Shown piece by piece: positions 18,170-26,509 of a stretch of DNA of 64,000 bases (position 1 is its first letter; each line of letters starts with the position of its first letter). The notes below the pieces were generated by a model. It saw only the letters and a list, made by a program, of their open reading frames with translations, did no database searches and was not told the DNA's origin. The position numbers were made by a program, and so were the translations under genes. The stretch is from Chlorokybus atmophyticus (lineage: Eukaryota; Plantae; Mesostigma and Chlorokybus algae), in NCBI GenBank assembly GCA_009103225.1, contig RHPI01002090.1:418652-482651 (forward strand), written 5' to 3'.

Positions 18170-21100
18170 GCCCGCCGCCCGTCCCGCCACCCGTACCGCC
18201 GCCGCCTTCGCCACCGCCGCCGCCGTGGCACTACCGCCTTCGTCCAGCTATTGCACTGTGTTGCGCCACGTTGGTGCCCTGACAAAGCCCAGTCATTAGC
18301 ACCAAGGCGGGTACATTTAACGTACATGTCCAGGACATGATGTCCCCCGCCCGTTGCATTCGGAATCCTGAACCTGTGGTTCAGTGCGTTCCAAGGAGTG
18401 CCACCTCACACTGCTGTTCGGTCGAATCAATTCAGGACTCAAGTCGCGGCGAATCGAGACGCGGAGCGTGGTGCTTGCACGCACCGTTGGCGTGCGCGTC
18501 ATCATTGCTGTACCAGCCTTGCTTGTCAGGGTCGAGGTTGTCAAGCATCTGATAGGCCAAGATGTAGGCAGAGTACGGCTCGTACTGTTCGGGCAAGAAG
18601 TGGTCATTGAGAGTTATGAGTACAAGTGTTGCCGAGCATATGTATGGCTTTGAATGGGGAGTAAAATCCTGTATGGTAAAGTCGTAGCTTTGGGCCACTC
18701 AATAAAATGATGAAAAGCCACACATCAGTTGCCAAACTTGTTGATTAGAGAATGGAGCAATAGCTTATAAGCTAAGCAACGCTAAGCAATGGACAAGTTG
18801 CACTTGATGAGAGTATTTGGCAATCACCTACATTGTATCACAAGCATAATTATGGATTATGGTCTCATCAAATATATAGCAGCTCACTCACAACTTGTGT
18901 GGACCTACCAACCCATCATGAACAACTTATACATACTAAAACAACTTGCGTTGACTTATCACCAATTTATTATAATGCTTAATGAATAGCATTAAAATCG
19001 TTTGTGTGTGTGTGATGTTGTTTGTAATGTGGTATTTATATGTGGGTGGAAAAAAAAATTATTATATTTAACAACGCGATAATTATAGCATCATTGTATT
19101 GTATGATATATTTGTCGTATGACCATTCTTCCTTACGACATGTGAATCCTTTTAAGCAAAAACCGTGCAGCACACAATCATGTGTATTTGTATTGTGTTA
19201 CAACAAGTAGAAATGATTACCTACATACGCATCTTAATTTAGGACGCCGATGAAGGGCAATATCTTTGTGTTAATTAAAAACAGTGTATACACTTTGCAT
19301 ATACATAAGCTTACACGTCAACTTCGTGACAACACACTTATATCACATGTTCAAGCTTGTGCACAAGCTTTAACGTAATCAAGCTTTTCAAAAACCTATA
19401 GCGTCTAACACAAAGGTCAACTTCACATTGTCATCCTTATATTGCATTAGATTTTTTGTCGTTCGTTGGCTAAGTGGTATAATATGTGAAAATGCTTCAC
19501 AACACTGTATTCACCTTCATGTCCCGCAGCATTTAACATTGTAACAAGCACATTATGAGCAATGCGATAATACGCACAGTTAGTCACATCCTGTAATGGT
19601 GAAGCAAAGATGAGCGACATATCAGGGTGCGCGGGGCAATAATTACATGCTGTTACAAGTCGTATGCAAATCATCATAAGCAAAAGTATATTGGAATGCG
19701 CATTGTTGCAATATTTGTCATTCATTGCACACCGTGAGCTGTTACGTGCGACTGACACACAACTTAACACACATACATTTACATCTTGTACATCTATACC
19801 TTGTACACAATACATTTGATGCAGTCATATCATAGCAAGCCATTATTGTCACAGAATTATGGTCAATTTGTGGTAATTTAATGTACCTTCCCGTTACAAT
19901 TATGATACATGCAGAACAAGAGGCGGTGATATGCAGTTGCCAGCTTTATCCAAGTTGACCACTTGGCTGTATAGCAATTTGTAAAGCTGAAACCCGGAGG
20001 GCACATGCAACGGCACTTAGCTTGCCTTTGTAATGCGTGTCACACCACCAAACCATGTCTTCTTACCTGCGACATGCATGTACATTCTCTCGCATCAACC
20101 ATGGCTGCAAGTTAATAGACAATAACCGTTTATGAGGATAATATCATAGATATTGCTCTGTAAGTGTTTTGCTGAGCTTTTACACCTGGAGCCAACATAG
20201 TGGCATTTACCATACTGTAGGGCATCTTCTACAACCACATACAACAATGCATGTAAATTGTCGTGATCTCGATACTGCCACGGTGGTGTTACCAGCCCAC
20301 CGAAACCCATTACATGTTAGTATCGTGATAGACGCGACGTGTGTGCCGTTTTAGCCGTCTACATTTAAGGGTGTATTAGCTGCTTTGTTTGGACATGATA
20401 TTGCCTTGTGCAAAACTCCTCATTACGTTTACAACATGCCACCCTCCCTCTGGCTGCAGGTTGTACACCTACCCCTCATGTCTCCTTGCCTGCACCCACT
20501 GCCGCATATGCACGCACACGCATACACGTAGTGTAGTGGTGGGTTGGTTACGTAAGTTTAACACCTACACCCCCCGGCCAAATATGTAAGAATTACCTTA
20601 CTTTCTATGCATAGCTTATTGGACAGTGCCTGATGCTATTTCATGTTTGCATCATTTGATATAACGTGTGCCATTAAGCAACAATTGTGGCCAAGTACTA
20701 TGCATCGCACATGCTTCATGCAAATTACACTCTGCTAAAATTGCGCAACTGTCAACGGCAACGTACAGTGACATGATTGCAACTTGTAGTGCTTATCTGC
20801 TATAGTGCTTATCTGCTATACATACAGAGATGCGGTTTAATGCTGTCGACTGACTCTTTACATGCTGCGGGGTGCACGCATATCGGCAACGGACTTCTAC
20901 AGACAGGTGGCGGAGGAGGCGACCACAGAAACAAGCAAAACAGCTCTCTGTACCACACTGATTGGCCCGCCTTGTCGCCTGCAAGCACCCTCTCACCTGG
21001 ACAGGCGAACAGCAAGCAACCTGACGACCGACATTTGCGCATACTGCAGGCACGTCAAGCTACGGCCAGCAGGCTGGCGCAGCAATGCCTACCACTTCAC

Positions 21101-21405
21101 GTTCCCTCGGAGGCTGACCACCAATGCCGCCAACCCCTAAAACACTAGGAACGATCGCCACCTTTGCCGCCACCGCCACTCAATGACTAGTGCAGTCTGC
21201 AATGCGCCGCTGCTCGCGTATTGACATGCACAACACCGACAGTCGGTACTGCTTCTTGTCGGTGAGAAGACTGGGCAACCATCGTATCAAACCTACCACA
21301 GCGCTGACAGACGCAAGGTCGCTGGTGGTGCGTACGCTGACTTGAAACCCAAAGCTGAACAGACAATGGGAAAAGAAGCTCACGTTGTTCTTCTTGCTTG
21401 CGGCC

Positions 21406-23739
21406 ATGTGGCGGCATGTGACGCCACATGGGGTGCAGGTGGCGGCTGCGGCTGCTGCCGGGGCGAGGGCGTTGCTGAAGGTGAAACAGCGGACAAGATG
21501 TTGCAAAGCAGCCTGCAGCTCGTCTGCTGCGGGAGCACTGCGCCGCCCGCAGTTGGCCAAACTAGGCAAAGCTGGGTCGCCTGGTTTCAGCGCAGCTTTA
21601 CGGAGACGGCAGCCTGCCCGTTATCCTGCATGTAGCCGTGAGCGCTGTCGTGCGAGCATGGCGACGGCTGCTGCCGGCGGTGAGGACGCTAGAAGTTTGC
21701 ACAATGCCCGGCAGAGCAAGTACTTTGACGCGGCTGTGGAGTACTTCACACAACCCATCCCTCAAGAGGTGACTTGGTGTTTCCATTGATGTATGTGGAG
21801 CATGCTCCACACACAGTTTGCATGCGAAGCGGAACTATGTCATGTGTGGTTAAGTGGAGCAGTGCTTGGCACGCATATATGCTTGTTTAGTAGGTACAGA
21901 TGCTGCGAGTAACCTCAGCCGCTGGAGCGCTGATGGGATGTGCAGGTCGTTGATAGGCTGCACCAGATTGTGGGAGCTGCAAAGTTGACACAATCAGCGC
22001 GTGTCTTGGATGTCGGTTCGGGTGTCGGGCCTCTCATCCCTATTATAGGTAGGACAGCAATTGCAGTGTTGTTAGTTGCGGTGTCCGCACTTTTCGATTC
22101 CTGTCAGACCCTTCAAGGTTTCTCTTCCCCCCAAACCCACGCAGCTGTTTGGCAGGTGCCCCAGACTGCTGCACAGGCACCTGGCAAACAGCTGCCGATA
22201 GGGGCTGCAGCAAAGCAAGTGCATGCAGCATGTTTACAGCGCAATAGCAAACATGCCATGCGGTTGCAGAGGCAGCAGGCGTGCCGCAAGACCAGATTGT
22301 TGCCGTGGATTTGTCGGAGGCAATGTTGGTAGAAAATAAAACTCTTCATGACGATGTGTCCTGCTGGATTGGTGATGTCGCGGACCTGCCAAAAGAGTAT
22401 GGTCCCTTTGATGCGGTGTTCATAAACGCCTGCTTTGGCAACTTTTATGACCAAGCGGCTGCGCTCGCTGATATTGTCTCACTCTGCAACCCAGGTGCAA
22501 ACAGCCGTGAATAGTGGAACCATCATGCATGCTGGCGTTGTCTGTGTTTGTGTTAAGCCGTGACGTTGACCAGGTGCTGCTATTGTTATAAGCCACCCGC
22601 TGGGTCATAGGTACGTGGAGCAACTTCATCAGGAATCGCCAGATCTTGTTCCCAACAGTTTGCCGCATAGCAATGCACTTGACGAGTTGGCTACGCCGTT
22701 GGGACTGCAAGTGGAATCACTAACTGATGAAGAGGACTTGTACCTGGCTCTTTTGCGGGTGCGTAATGGCACTGTAAGCTCAGCTGTGTTTTGCTCTGTC
22801 AAGCTAATGCATCAATGTTGGGACAGATAGGTTAATGCGGATCATGTACCGGACCATCGACTTGGCAGCTCGGAGTTGCAACCATCTCAGATCGATGATT
22901 TGAGCAATCCCTCTGCAGAGCTAGCAGGTTGCAAAACTCTTGCGTTGCAGCACTTGTAATCAGGTACTGAAGAGAGTCTGACTGCTCTTCTTTCTTTGTT
23001 GCAACAGGTGCATTGTACCTAGACAAGGCTCCTGTTTACCTGCGAGGTCCCGTGGTCAGTGGCTTCGGCCGTGGTAGCAAGCAGATGGGCATACCAACAG
23101 GTGCTTTGTTGCTGCAGTGCCCGAACATTTTCCAAGTCTACTCTGGTTTGATACAATGCAAGCACTAAAATGCGCTAACTGCGTTCGTAGCTAATCTACC
23201 ACCGGAGCAGCTGCAAGAGGAATTGGAGGGCATTCAACTGGGGGTGTATTTTGGGTGGGCTGCCCTAGCAGAAGGGAATGACCAACCTCACAAGATGGTA
23301 ATGAACGTGGGCAAGCGACCAACATTTGTGGACGGGGAGGGCATCACGGTGGTAAGCGTTGTTGTACACATACAGCCATGATGCTTGCGCTGTCACACCC
23401 AGATGTGCGAAGCATCAGGTCCATTGGCCATGATTGACATCAAGGTCTTGTAGGAACTTCACATCATGCACAAATACCCCTCAGACTTCTATGGCAAGGA
23501 GCTTCGTGCCGTCGTCCTCGGCTTTGTGCGCGGGGAGCAGAAGTTTTCTTCAATAGGTATGAGCAGCTCATGCACTTCATTTGCATGCAAGCAACGCGCA
23601 TGCAGATGACCTCGCCAACTCTTGGGCAGGTGAACTCATCGCGCGCATCCACAAGGACATAGAAGTCGCAGATGCAGCTCTTGATCGACCCATGTGGTCA
23701 GTGTACCACCAGGATCCGTTCTTCTACCAAAAAACTTGA
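21406..23739 (+). CDS. Transit peptide + class I SAM methyltransferase + riboflavin kinase (flavokinase) fusion, 9 exons
   Basis: MTase motifs: VLDVGSGVG, VAVDLSEAM, FDAVFINACF, ISHPLG. Linker exon 22831-22927 is open and phase-matched. RFK motifs: [53 protein letters not shown], then IHKDIEVA...*. Confidence 0.86.
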
Positions 23740-24485
23740 GAATTGCCCGTGCGCCTGAGCGTGATCCCTTGGCTGTACGTGCAGTTGCAACTGTGACTTC
23801 ACCCTTGTGTATGGGTTCCGGTTTCTTTTTGTACTGTCTAGCACGACCAAGTTCAGCAGTCAATATGGTTAAGCAACGAGCCTCCAAAAGGTTACGTATA
23901 ATTATACACCGAGAAGATTATGTGGGCACTCAACAATGCCAAAAACGCATTATTGCAAGTGTGCCTGCAAAGTCAGAACTGACAACAGCTCCACGTGCAA
24001 GATATGACAGGTCCAGGAATGCACATGTCTTCCGATTCTGAGCTTGCCTTGGGCAGCTCTTATGTGCTTATGTATGCCAGCAGAAATGATATATCCTGAC
24101 CCGTTGGACTTGTGCTGTACTTCTTGCGCGATATGTCAAATGCTATACTCAATCCGGCTTGGCAGTCTCAGTTTGCAGGACGACTACACTGCTACAGCTG
24201 CCATATGCAGAACCCACTTGCAACCAGCAGGTAGATTGCTACCATTCATTGCGTCAGGTGTAGTGGGCCATGGCAGCTGCCATGGCCTATTACAAACAAG
24301 GCCATCTGTGCTTGACAATATGTAGTGCTCGCATAAAGCGGCGGAACCACACACAATGGAGTGTAATTTGCATTTGTGACCACCCATGCTTGTTCTCCAC
24401 ACTGTAAATTGTTTTTTGTCCAACTGTACAATGCATGCAAGTGCATCAAACACAATTCGCGCATTTGGAACATAATCATGTCCTG

Positions 24486-26509
24486 TCACCGAGTCGGGAT
24501 AGCATCAAGTCAAGTTCCGTCTCCAAGACAACAGACTGCGCCTCGTAAAACTCCAGCATATCCATACATATCACCTGCACCTGTTGCCAGCAGAGAATAG
24601 GAGTGGATGGCTTGTACAGTGCACCATATGACATGACCACACTATAGCTGAACTCTAGTTGGTTGTGACACGCAAGGCTGTTTCATGTTCAAATTCCTTC
24701 ATGCAGGCCTTGACAACAAGCATAAGGACAACTGTTTTTGCAGCAAACAGTCCCATACATATGTTTTTCGCAAGCTGCATTGAGCCGCAAGCATGGCTTT
24801 GCTGCATGCACGCGAGCAGATACATATGCAGGGCGCATGTACCTCATTCAAGTCCACACGCAGTTCCTCAAACCATGCGCGGATGTCGATGTCCCGGCTC
24901 ACACTCGCAAGGTACATGCACGCGAGCGCCACCATGTAAGGAGGATGCACCAGCAGGAGATCCGTCTTGTACGAGTCATTCACATGCGCCCTGCAACCAC
25001 CAGAGGTGCATGTCTCATCATAACTCAAAAGTATGCGTCTCAACATACTGTTACCAGCCACCAACAGTTGTTGTTGTTACAAGATAAACTACCATGCAGT
25101 CCGCAGCAGCTGCTCTTTGACGCCCGCATCCGTCAAAAACCTGCAGTTGAGCAAATCCACATTATAATGGCATGCAGTTTCCATGAGGAGGCATACGCCA
25201 GGCCATGACACGAACTCGTTTGCTTACTGCGCGAGAGGTCGATACGGGTGGAACACGATGAGGTTGTAAGAGAGCGACTCGAGCAAGTACATCTCCATCT
25301 CTAAGAGGTGTCTCACATCAAAGTGGTGCGCCTTGTGTACCTCTAACCCCACATGTTTTCAGTAAACAACAACTAGCCCTCGATACCCATGTGCATGCAT
25401 GCACACGTACTTAGTTTCTTCATCATGTGGACAAGCAGCTTAGCCTGCACCGGGCTTTCCTCAGCCTTCGATGCCAGGTAAAGGCACGCCGGCGCAGACA
25501 GACGCGGGTCGTACTCAACAAATGCGTGCCTGGTAGGTGGGAGCAGCAGGTTCGAACACATTGCCACACATACGCACGATGTGAGTGACACATAGATTTG
25601 GCAACAAGGGCGGAGCACACTCACTTTGTATAGAGTCTTCTGTAGTAGATGATTGCTGTGGCAACCACCCTGAAGGACAATGCACGTGCATTGACAACAG
25701 ACACACTTTGTTACGCAAAATAGCACGGCAAGACAGCTACACCAGCAGCTGTGTCTTTAACTACACTCACCTCTGGCGCAGTTTACACTGCATGGCGAGC
25801 TTTGTGATGTCTGCAAACAGGCACACACAACATGTCACACAGGAGTCCAGATTCCACGCACACATGCGCATGACGCATCCAAACAGGCGGTTAAGTGAAG
25901 GTCAAATTAACCTTTACAACATTATGCAACGCAACACGATTGTTCGTAAGCGCTGATACTCGCAACCCCTCGATGCCTTGCACCACATCGCTTACAGTCT
26001 GCATGATGGATCTTGACTTTGCGCACTTCTACAAGGGTGAAGCCTGCCTCTGCGTCACGAGGATGCAACGCACCCGCGTCGCACTTCTCCACCAGCTGCT
26101 TGCTAACCACAGTCCCCAACCCAATGGCATTAGCAACAAGAAGTAGTAGTGGTGGATCAAAGACTGCTACGTTATCCAAGCAAAGTTAGCATGAAGACAT
26201 GATGGGCAGACACTTCCGCGCCCTCATACACGCGCAAATCCAAGAAAACCGACATATGAACATACACATCTCGAGCAGTCCACCGATTACCCAACAGATT
26301 GACTGCTGGAACGTGGTGTTGCGTGCATTTCCCACAGGGCAATGCACGCAAACCACAGGCGACGCCGCCTCTGCAACCACTGCATACCAGCTGTCCTTTC
26401 TGCATGAGTCACGGGGCCTGTCCAGCAGGCTAGCTGCCCAGCGGTATATACGCAAGACTCCGAAGAAACAGGCTCACCAGTGGCTTGAGATCCAGAAGTT
26501 TGCGGCCAT
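24486..26509 (-). CDS. CYCC: Cyclin C (Mediator kinase module)
   Basis: MAANFWISSH start, KLRQRVVATAIIYYRRLY, DPRLSAPACLYLASKAEE, LLEMEMYLLESL..LIVFHPYRPL, NDSYKTDLLLVHPPYMVALAC. Exons are phase-consistent. Confidence 0.94.

Follow-up and report, generated by a model that had tools for sequence, protein, structure and literature searches.

A riboflavin kinase predicted to carry an N-terminal methyltransferase domain in Chlorokybus atmophyticus and across Viridiplantae

Why would a riboflavin kinase carry a methyltransferase domain? The question is raised by a gene of the alga Chlorokybus atmophyticus, which lies in a 64,000-nucleotide stretch of contig RHPI01002090.1 (positions 418,652 to 482,651 of the forward strand, assembly GCA_009103225.1; hereafter the window). 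The gene occupies window positions 21406-23739 on the plus strand and has nine exons. The original prediction, made from the DNA letters, described it as an S-adenosylmethionine (SAM)-dependent methyltransferase fused to a riboflavin kinase behind an organellar transit peptide, and proposed that the methyltransferase may modify a flavin or regulate the organellar supply of flavin mononucleotide (FMN). Following this up computationally, we find that the gene is best explained, with a probability of about 0.72, as coding for a plastid riboflavin kinase of the type represented by Chlamydomonas RFK2, equipped with a methyltransferase domain.

We read positions 20800-24400 and translated the three forward frames. 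The exons (Table 1) total 1440 nt, corresponding to 479 codons and a stop, and the eight introns, 72-221 nt in length, all run from GT to AG. Exon 4 ends in LYLALLR at 22758 in phase 0, immediately before a GT; exon 5, preceded by AG, encodes VNADHVPDHRLGSSELQPSQIDDLSNPSAELA plus one base; and exon 6, which begins at 23008, is read with the G carried over from exon 5. A codon split as g and ct across exons 6 and 7 gives PTANL, and exon 8 opens with ELHIMH. Omission of exon 5 leads to an early stop (gtg cat tgt acc tag). In the kinase frame, no ATG occurs from the stop at ~22968 to the GFGRGS motif, so the kinase half is not translatable alone. The exon phases force a single reading frame through both domains. 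Re-reading upheld the originally predicted exon coordinates, the LYLALLR end, and the phase conversion ascribed to the 97-nt exon 22831-22927, and the PTAN and Glu-x-His motifs that had been called intact can be read directly from the translation.

Exons were searched singly, and the public Chlorokybus model, jgi/Chlat1/3898 (P0101, 416 aa), served as a stand-in for the whole protein. Once translated, exon 1 (from 21658) and each of exons 2-9 recur letter for letter within that model, which shares the linker exon and the junctions, apart from the start site and one extra exon. At the level of domain architecture, Pfam gives Methyltransf_25/11 in exon 3 and Flavokinase in exons 6-8. With matches for both halves joined in frame, the gene is predicted to code for one polypeptide that combines a SAM-methyltransferase domain with a riboflavin kinase, in line with the fusion first proposed.

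The kinase half is the more readily assigned. Against the Flavokinase profile (PF01687, cut-off 19.6 bits), exon 6 scores 20.3 bits over profile positions 3-25, exon 7 scores 26.2 bits over positions 35-69, and exon 8, with the query extended 8 nt into the intron, scores 26.7 bits over positions 74-106. The three matches are colinear and all above the cut-off, and close full-length relatives match the profile at 1e-26 to 1e-36. The catalytic roles of the GxGRGS flap, the PTAN motif, and the Glu are known from human and S. pombe structures; GFGRGS, PTANL, and ELHIMH are intact in Chlorokybus. Residues G280, G284, T292, G310, V311, N331, G333, P336, E347, F358, and R372 are invariant in the aligned family (85/85 members).

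AlphaFold was used to model Chlat1/3898 with 85 aligned relatives, giving a mean per-residue confidence (pLDDT) of 86.2 and a predicted template modeling score (pTM) of 0.70. Low pLDDT is limited to the first five residues, a doubtful insert discussed below, and the exon-5 linker (residues 239-263), whose pLDDT of 40-42 predicts disorder. Helices are modeled at residues 380-413, the exon 9 region. A Foldseek comparison of the C-terminal 150 residues matched human riboflavin kinase (1NB0) with a template modeling (TM) score of 0.88 and a root-mean-square deviation (rmsd) of 2.2, and the S. pombe enzyme (1N06) with a TM score of 0.84; together these matches span TM 0.84-0.88, rmsd 2.2-2.4, and 40-42% identity. 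The kinase module of bacterial RibF matched less well, at 28%. From profile and model alike, the C-terminal half is assigned as a eukaryote-type riboflavin kinase (EC 2.7.1.26) with the six-stranded β-barrel fold. Human RFK (1NB0/1Q9S) and S. pombe Fmn1 (1N06) share the GxGRGS flap, PTAN, and catalytic Glu with it but, unlike the Chlorokybus protein, have no methyltransferase domain and are not plastid enzymes.

A riboflavin kinase with a second, N-terminal domain has a precedent within the green lineage in AtFMN/FHy. Its partner, however, is an unrelated domain of the HAD phosphatase type (PF13419/PF00702) that acts as an FMN hydrolase; the enzyme is cytosolic, and on kinase sequence it belongs with an animal kinase to a distinct, well-supported clade. 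In a maximum-likelihood tree of 42 kinase domains (IQ-TREE), the HAD-fused riboflavin kinases (HAD-RFK) and the animal kinase form one clade with support of 100/95. The proteins fused to a methyltransferase domain all lie on the other side of the tree, with Chlorokybus among those of streptophyte algae; the root of the tree is not established.

How widespread is this second type of fusion? When the 74 aa of exon 3 alone served as a phmmer query, 97 relatives were returned from 1.84 billion representative sequences, and 11 of the 20 scanned also carry a C-terminal Flavokinase domain. Word-index searches seeded with three full-length relatives returned well over 100 proteins with identical domain order, and all 85 aligned members place the methyltransferase fold before the Flavokinase domain. 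Fused proteins occur in streptophyte algae (Mesostigma, Klebsormidium, and Spirogloea); in chlorophytes (Chlorella, Micractinium, Nannochloris, Trebouxia, Myrmecia, Raphidocelis, Monoraphidium, Enallax, Dunaliella, Haematococcus, Chlamydomonas eustigma, Acetabularia, Caulerpa, Pyramimonas, Cymbomonas, Tetraselmis, Micromonas, and Bathycoccus); in mosses (Ceratodon, Physcomitrium, and Sphagnum); in liverworts (Marchantia, Riccia, and Calypogeia); and in ferns (Adiantum and Ceratopteris). Given that several of these relatives are complete open reading frames (ORFs; labeled 'ORF type:complete') in transcriptome assemblies (MMETSP, TSA, Trinity), the fusion is carried on a single mRNA in them. Linker length varies, and the domains nearly abut in chlorophytes. 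From seed plants, a moss-seeded word-index search, which cannot prove absence, returned only HAD-RFK proteins of the AtFMN/FHy type that match the kinase third alone, which suggests that the fused type was lost in seed plants.

A Volvox-seeded search led to CHLRE_01g025250v5 (P0241) of Chlamydomonas reinhardtii, which is Cre01.g025250, or RFK2. By sequence comparison, the Chlorokybus gene is assigned as an orthologue of this green-lineage RFK2-type riboflavin kinase. The two proteins share family, domain order, and kinase residues. They differ in that RFK2 lacks the motif I Asp, the third Gly, and the Ser-His-Pro motif, all of which Chlorokybus keeps, and Pfam finds no methyltransferase in RFK2; Chlorokybus additionally has the 32-residue linker exon. 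The suggestion that similar fusions may exist in other green algae was right: judged by these sequences, the fusion is old and Viridiplantae-wide, and database entries say only 'riboflavin kinase', ignoring the N-terminal half. In a literature search of incomplete coverage, which is not proof of absence, we found no paper linking a riboflavin kinase with this methyltransferase domain; as far as that search goes, the original statement that no function has been described stands. Two further observations concern members of these lineages. In Riccia fluitans (P0305, P0313), the kinase part occurs a second time in a nearly identical but shorter protein (288 aa), and two Closterium proteins of 331-359 aa (P0323, P0331), in which Pfam detects only the kinase, group with the streptophyte-alga fused proteins.

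The methyltransferase half is recognizable as to fold but not as to substrate. Exon 3 alone matches PF13649 (Methyltransf_25) with 33.0 bits (cut-off 27) and PF08241 (Methyltransf_11) with 31.6 bits (cut-off 21.2). We defined a SAM-binding signature of seven residues on the 85-sequence alignment, comprising the motif I Asp and three Gly, the acidic residue at the end of β2, the Asp of GDV, and the Asp of FDAV. Chlorokybus has 7/7 (LDVGSGVG, AVDLS, GDVADLP, FDAVF). The motif I Asp and three Gly are conserved in the family, and Gln10 of the domain, in the N-terminal helix, is invariant in two alignments (A2 and A5). Folded alone by AlphaFold, the domain adopts a canonical class I methyltransferase fold, seven-stranded and Rossmann-like (pLDDT 92.7, pTM 0.90).

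Structural neighbors of this model include Hvo_0019 (6F5Z_B; Z 21.1), UbiG (Z 20.0), a bacterial phosphatidylethanolamine (PE) N-methyltransferase (Z 19.1), DhpI (Z 18.9), and ChlM (Z 18.6); toxoflavin N-methyltransferase also appears (Z 18.1), scoring no better than unrelated enzymes. In a profile search of PDB sequences, plant phosphoethanolamine N-methyltransferase (PEAMT) ranked first (E 1.9e-20). Hvo_0019, UbiG, PE N-methyltransferase, DhpI, ChlM, and PEAMT have the fold and SAM site in common with the algal domain (Z 18.6-21.1 over 176-189 residues), but identity is only 14-20%, and with no neighbor standing out from the flat list, none of their substrates can be assigned to the algal domain. 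No curated NCBIfam equivalog cut-off was reached among UbiE/MenG, BioC, PEAMT, ChlM, ArsM, and others, where the best scores were 45-68 bits vs cut-offs of 155-327, and the exon-by-exon NCBIfam scan yielded sub-threshold matches only. Sequence and model agree on a generic small-molecule class I methyltransferase. In Chlorokybus, the domain has most likely retained SAM binding and the methylation of a small molecule; it is probably a working enzyme here because the motifs, where kept, are under selection as an active site.

That selection becomes visible when the family is compared across lineages. The full signature is present in Chlorokybus and 59 others (60/85), and five or fewer of its residues remain in 17 proteins, which come from land plants, Reinhardtinia (including RFK2), Mamiellophyceae, Tetraselmis, and Cymbomonas. 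A family-specific Ser-His-Pro motif after β5 was lost in all 17 of these degenerate proteins and kept in 65 of the 68 others, the remaining three still having His-Pro. The most parsimonious count on the tree is five losses, of which well-supported branches enforce at least three. Cymbomonas, with degenerate motifs, is sister to Pyramimonas, whose motifs are intact. The land plants are united in one clade (99/98) and have an Asp-to-His change in common. In all moss, liverwort, and fern members compared (P0140, P0154, P0303, P0042, P0258, P0305, P0306, P0310), the acidic residue of β2 is replaced by His (VAHWS, VSHCS, VNHFS) and one residue is deleted at the motif I Asp. Such shared changes suggest that the domain was inactivated once, in an ancestor from which the land plants descend.

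Loss of the SAM site did not entail loss of the domain. Between C. reinhardtii and Volvox carteri, the degenerate N-terminal domain is still conserved, at 69% vs 66% for the kinase; between Ceratodon and Marchantia, identity is 39% for the N-terminal domain vs 58% for the kinase. Given that the domain outlasts the loss of catalysis, it would appear to have a role that does not depend on catalysis. Because the kinase is intact in every lineage, including those that lost the SAM site, methyl transfer is not required for FMN formation.

Where might the protein act? The 84 residues encoded upstream of the methyltransferase domain comprise 20 Ala, 13 Arg, 5 Lys, and 7 Ser, with 0 Asp and 1 Glu. Their frame is open from the first ATG (21406) that follows an in-frame stop at ~21343, and in most full-length orthologue models 20-185 residues precede the methyltransferase domain and its conserved HNxxQxxFD helix. 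Chlamydomonas RFK2 shows high chlorophyll overlap and was termed thylakoid-associated in the Chloroplast Protein Atlas, a preprint that handles it as a plain riboflavin kinase (bioRxiv 10.1101/2022.05.31.493820). A presequence is likely to be present in Chlorokybus, and by analogy with RFK2 the plastid would be its likeliest destination. The organellar transit peptide of the original prediction is accordingly plausible in its composition, in the extensions of orthologues, and in the chloroplast location of RFK2; the start codon on which it depends is at odds with the public model, which begins at 21658. A further ATG at 21366 opens a 97-codon ORF (21342-21635), which could form an upstream or overlapping ORF if the 5' untranslated region extends so far.

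The public model differs from ours in two respects. Chlat1/3898 begins at the second Met (21658), hence without the 84-residue extension, and it contains an additional 63-nt exon between exons 2 and 3. The residues of this exon are absent from all 19 orthologues compared, the pLDDT of the segment lies in the range of below 50 to 62, and its inclusion would break the helix after motif I with about 21 extra residues; joining exon 2 directly to exon 3 gives a gap-free alignment with Mesostigma. The 63-nt exon (22156-22218) probably reflects an annotation error or, alternatively, a cassette that is spliced in optionally. If anything, the originally predicted gene structure appears the better of the two at the start site and at this exon.

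Beyond the green lineage, the methyltransferase domain has its closest relatives in Obscuribacterales metagenome-assembled genomes (MAGs), which encode them as stand-alone proteins of 206-215 residues (e.g., MFN8657606.1). Alignments of these proteins with the algal domain extend over the full length at 34-45% identity and include the HNxxQxxFD helix, the SAM motifs, and the S-H-P motif; unlike the Chlorokybus protein, they are not fused to a kinase. Their genes lie in a block that encodes formimidoyltransferase-cyclodeaminase (FTCD), an M50B peptidase (divergent), the methyltransferase, and an EamA transporter. This FTCD/M50B/methyltransferase/EamA synteny was seen only in one narrow group, Obscuribacterales-like MAGs, and because the group is so narrow no function can be deduced from it. 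The riboflavin transporter RibN is a DMT-family protein; a link from EamA to riboflavin is a lead only. A scan of 185,579 species returned one close relative (locus L006, 52%), the others being generic methyltransferases at 25-44%, and the ESM Atlas returned only generic methyltransferase clusters for the bacterial relative. Some of the kinase-less bacterial methyltransferases (P0211, P0218, P0221) are auto-annotated 'riboflavin kinase', a label evidently transferred from the algal fusion proteins.

The surroundings of the gene in the window were also inspected. Downstream, two exon-sized ORFs on the minus strand (24699-25726) have weak cyclin matches (Cyclin_C_2, E 9e-4; Cyclin_N and Cyclin_C, E 3-5e-3) and probably belong to a cyclin gene. 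About 2 kb upstream lies an AT-rich stretch (18750-19650; GC 0.31-0.39 vs 0.5-0.6 around it), in which no ORF has a Pfam match.

Table 1. Exons of the Chlorokybus gene, the additional exon of the public model, and the bacterial methyltransferase genes. Positions are those of the window, except for the bacterial genes, which are numbered within their own loci (L001, L005, L006).
Feature	Positions	Strand	Content
Exon 1	21406-21768	+	Putative presequence (first 84 codons, 21406-21657) and N-terminal helix of the methyltransferase domain (21658-21768)
Exon 1, remainder	21658-21768	+	HNxxQxxxFD motif; same as Chlat1/3898 residues 1-37
Exon 2	21946-22048	+	Motif I, VLDVGSGVG; weak Pfam methyltransferase matches; same as Chlat1/3898 residues 38-71
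Exon 3	22270-22494	+	Strands β2-β4 (AVDLS, GDVADLP, FDAVFINACFGN); same as Chlat1/3898 residues 94-167
Exon 4	22574-22758	+	C-terminal half of the methyltransferase domain, Ser-His-Pro motif; same as Chlat1/3898 residues 169-229
Exon 5	22831-22927	+	97-nt linker exon, phase shift, joins both domains; same as Chlat1/3898 residues 230-261
Exon 6	23008-23100	+	Start of the riboflavin kinase: GFGRGS flap, first part of PTAN
Exon 7	23191-23351	+	Riboflavin kinase core; N331, G333, P336 invariant
Exon 8	23454-23556	+	Riboflavin kinase, Glu-x-His motif (ELHIMH); E347 invariant in 85/85
Exon 9	23630-23739	+	C-terminal helices of the kinase, TGA stop at 23737-23739; same as Chlat1/3898 residues 382-416
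63-nt exon, public model only	22156-22218	+	APDCCTGTWQTAADRGCSKA, between exons 2 and 3; Chlat1/3898 residues 72-93
Bacterial methyltransferases	L001 6001-6621; L005 6001-6630; L006 4986-5606		EamA 5-19 nt downstream in L001 and L005; overlaps the methyltransferase stop in L006

Taken as an RFK2-type plastid kinase with a methyltransferase domain, the protein would work as follows. One nuclear gene would yield one three-part polypeptide of presequence, methyltransferase domain, and riboflavin kinase. The Ala/Arg-rich presequence would direct it into the plastid, where the class I methyltransferase domain would bind SAM and methylate a small molecule. Beyond the disordered linker encoded by the 97-nt exon, the kinase would convert riboflavin to FMN using ATP and Mg, an activity that we regard as constant and essential throughout the family. 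The N-terminal domain would also have a second, non-catalytic role, probably docking or regulation, and possibly the thylakoid association seen for Chlamydomonas RFK2. Such a second role would be the reason that the domain was kept where the SAM site decayed.

Several findings weigh against this reading. The methyltransferase fits no curated functional family, every NCBIfam match being far below cut-off, and with a flat list of structural neighbors any choice of substrate would be guesswork. That the SAM site was lost repeatedly implies that methyl transfer is dispensable in many lineages, and it may be irrelevant here too. As to targeting, the public model starts at the second Met without any presequence; an out-of-frame ATG at 21366 lies ahead of the proposed start at 21406; a second frame is also open over the same GC-rich stretch, which makes the open frame upstream of 21658 weak evidence; and for the thylakoid association there is a single fluorescence study, made on a member with degenerate methyltransferase motifs. 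One alternative is that in Chlorokybus, too, the N-terminal domain has ceased to be an enzyme and is a module of methyltransferase fold serving only to dock, to dimerize, or to regulate the kinase, the part it must play in land plants, Reinhardtinia, and Mamiellophyceae. Selection on the domain in lineages without the SAM residues, about five independent losses on the tree (at least three of them forced), and the failure to assign a substrate family would all fit such a protein. Set against them, Chlorokybus keeps all seven SAM residues as well as the Ser-His-Pro motif, as do 60-65 of the 85 members, and the motifs are lost only together, which is the pattern of a selected active site; we consider a purely non-catalytic domain unlikely in this alga. 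The opposite and more ambitious proposal is a true bifunctional plastid enzyme, whose methyltransferase would have as its substrate a small molecule associated with thylakoids (a lipid, a quinone, a tetrapyrrole, or a flavin-related compound), in a step functionally linked to FMN supply. By that proposal, the RFK2 type would be the organellar riboflavin kinase of the green lineage; bryophytes and ferns would have retained it fused to a pseudo-methyltransferase, and seed plants would have lost it. We treat it as speculative and, taken as a whole, distinctly improbable.

A methyltransferase that modifies riboflavin, FMN, or a flavin analogue, making the fusion a flavin-modifying bifunctional enzyme, draws its support from the fusion itself (a Rosetta-stone argument) and its conservation, with toxoflavin N-methyltransferase as one of many structural neighbors. 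No specific similarity to RosA or to any other flavin methyltransferase was found: RosA, the roseoflavin N,N-dimethyltransferase, is absent from the 60 PDB sequence matches listed and from the top 50 of both structure searches, and although SAM use and a flavin theme are common to both, it shares with the algal domain only the general class I fold. The kinase, moreover, is invariant in lineages with a dead methyltransferase, and the genes of the Obscuribacterales relatives adjoin those for the M50B peptidase and the EamA transporter, not flavin genes. To our knowledge, no methylated flavin has been described from green algae or bryophytes. The proposal that the methyltransferase acts on a flavin is not supported by these results, and we judge it very unlikely. 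Still harder to sustain is the view that the two domains are separate proteins, encoded by two genes or a mis-joined model, with exon 5 a prediction artefact. A TGTAA in the intron after exon 5 and the presence of at least one doubtful exon in the public annotation of this gene could be read that way; yet the kinase frame has no start codon ahead of the GFGRGS flap, the same colinear fusion occurs in complete transcripts of many relatives, the chlorophyte domains abut with almost no linker, and exon 5 is cleanly bordered by AG and GT and brings the two halves exactly into frame. A two-gene reading is scarcely credible on this evidence. Destination is a separate matter: the protein could go to mitochondria, or to both organelles, since an Ala/Arg-rich presequence poor in acidic residues suits either kind of targeting peptide, and riboflavin kinase activity has been reported from tobacco mitochondria (Giancaspero et al. 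2009, as cited in PMC9678776). Chlamydomonas RFK2, the sole family member to have been localized, is nevertheless chloroplastic, and a mitochondrial or dual address seems improbable.

For the RFK2-type plastid kinase, the implications reach beyond one alga. Riboflavin is made in the plastid by plants, and plastids need FMN. We know of no gene assigned to an organellar riboflavin kinase in land plants. Of the riboflavin kinases of plants, only the cytosolic AtFMN/FHy has been characterized (Lynch et al. 2022, PMC9678776). For algae, bryophytes, and ferns, the RFK2-type fusion makes a strong candidate for the role of organellar kinase. Recognizing the family also accounts for mislabeled stand-alone methyltransferases in bacteria and would correct the public Chlorokybus model in two places, the missing presequence and the doubtful 63-nt exon. 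Finally, a conserved methyltransferase that appears to have turned pseudoenzyme about five times and was retained nonetheless offers a natural experiment on what a fused domain does after catalysis is lost.

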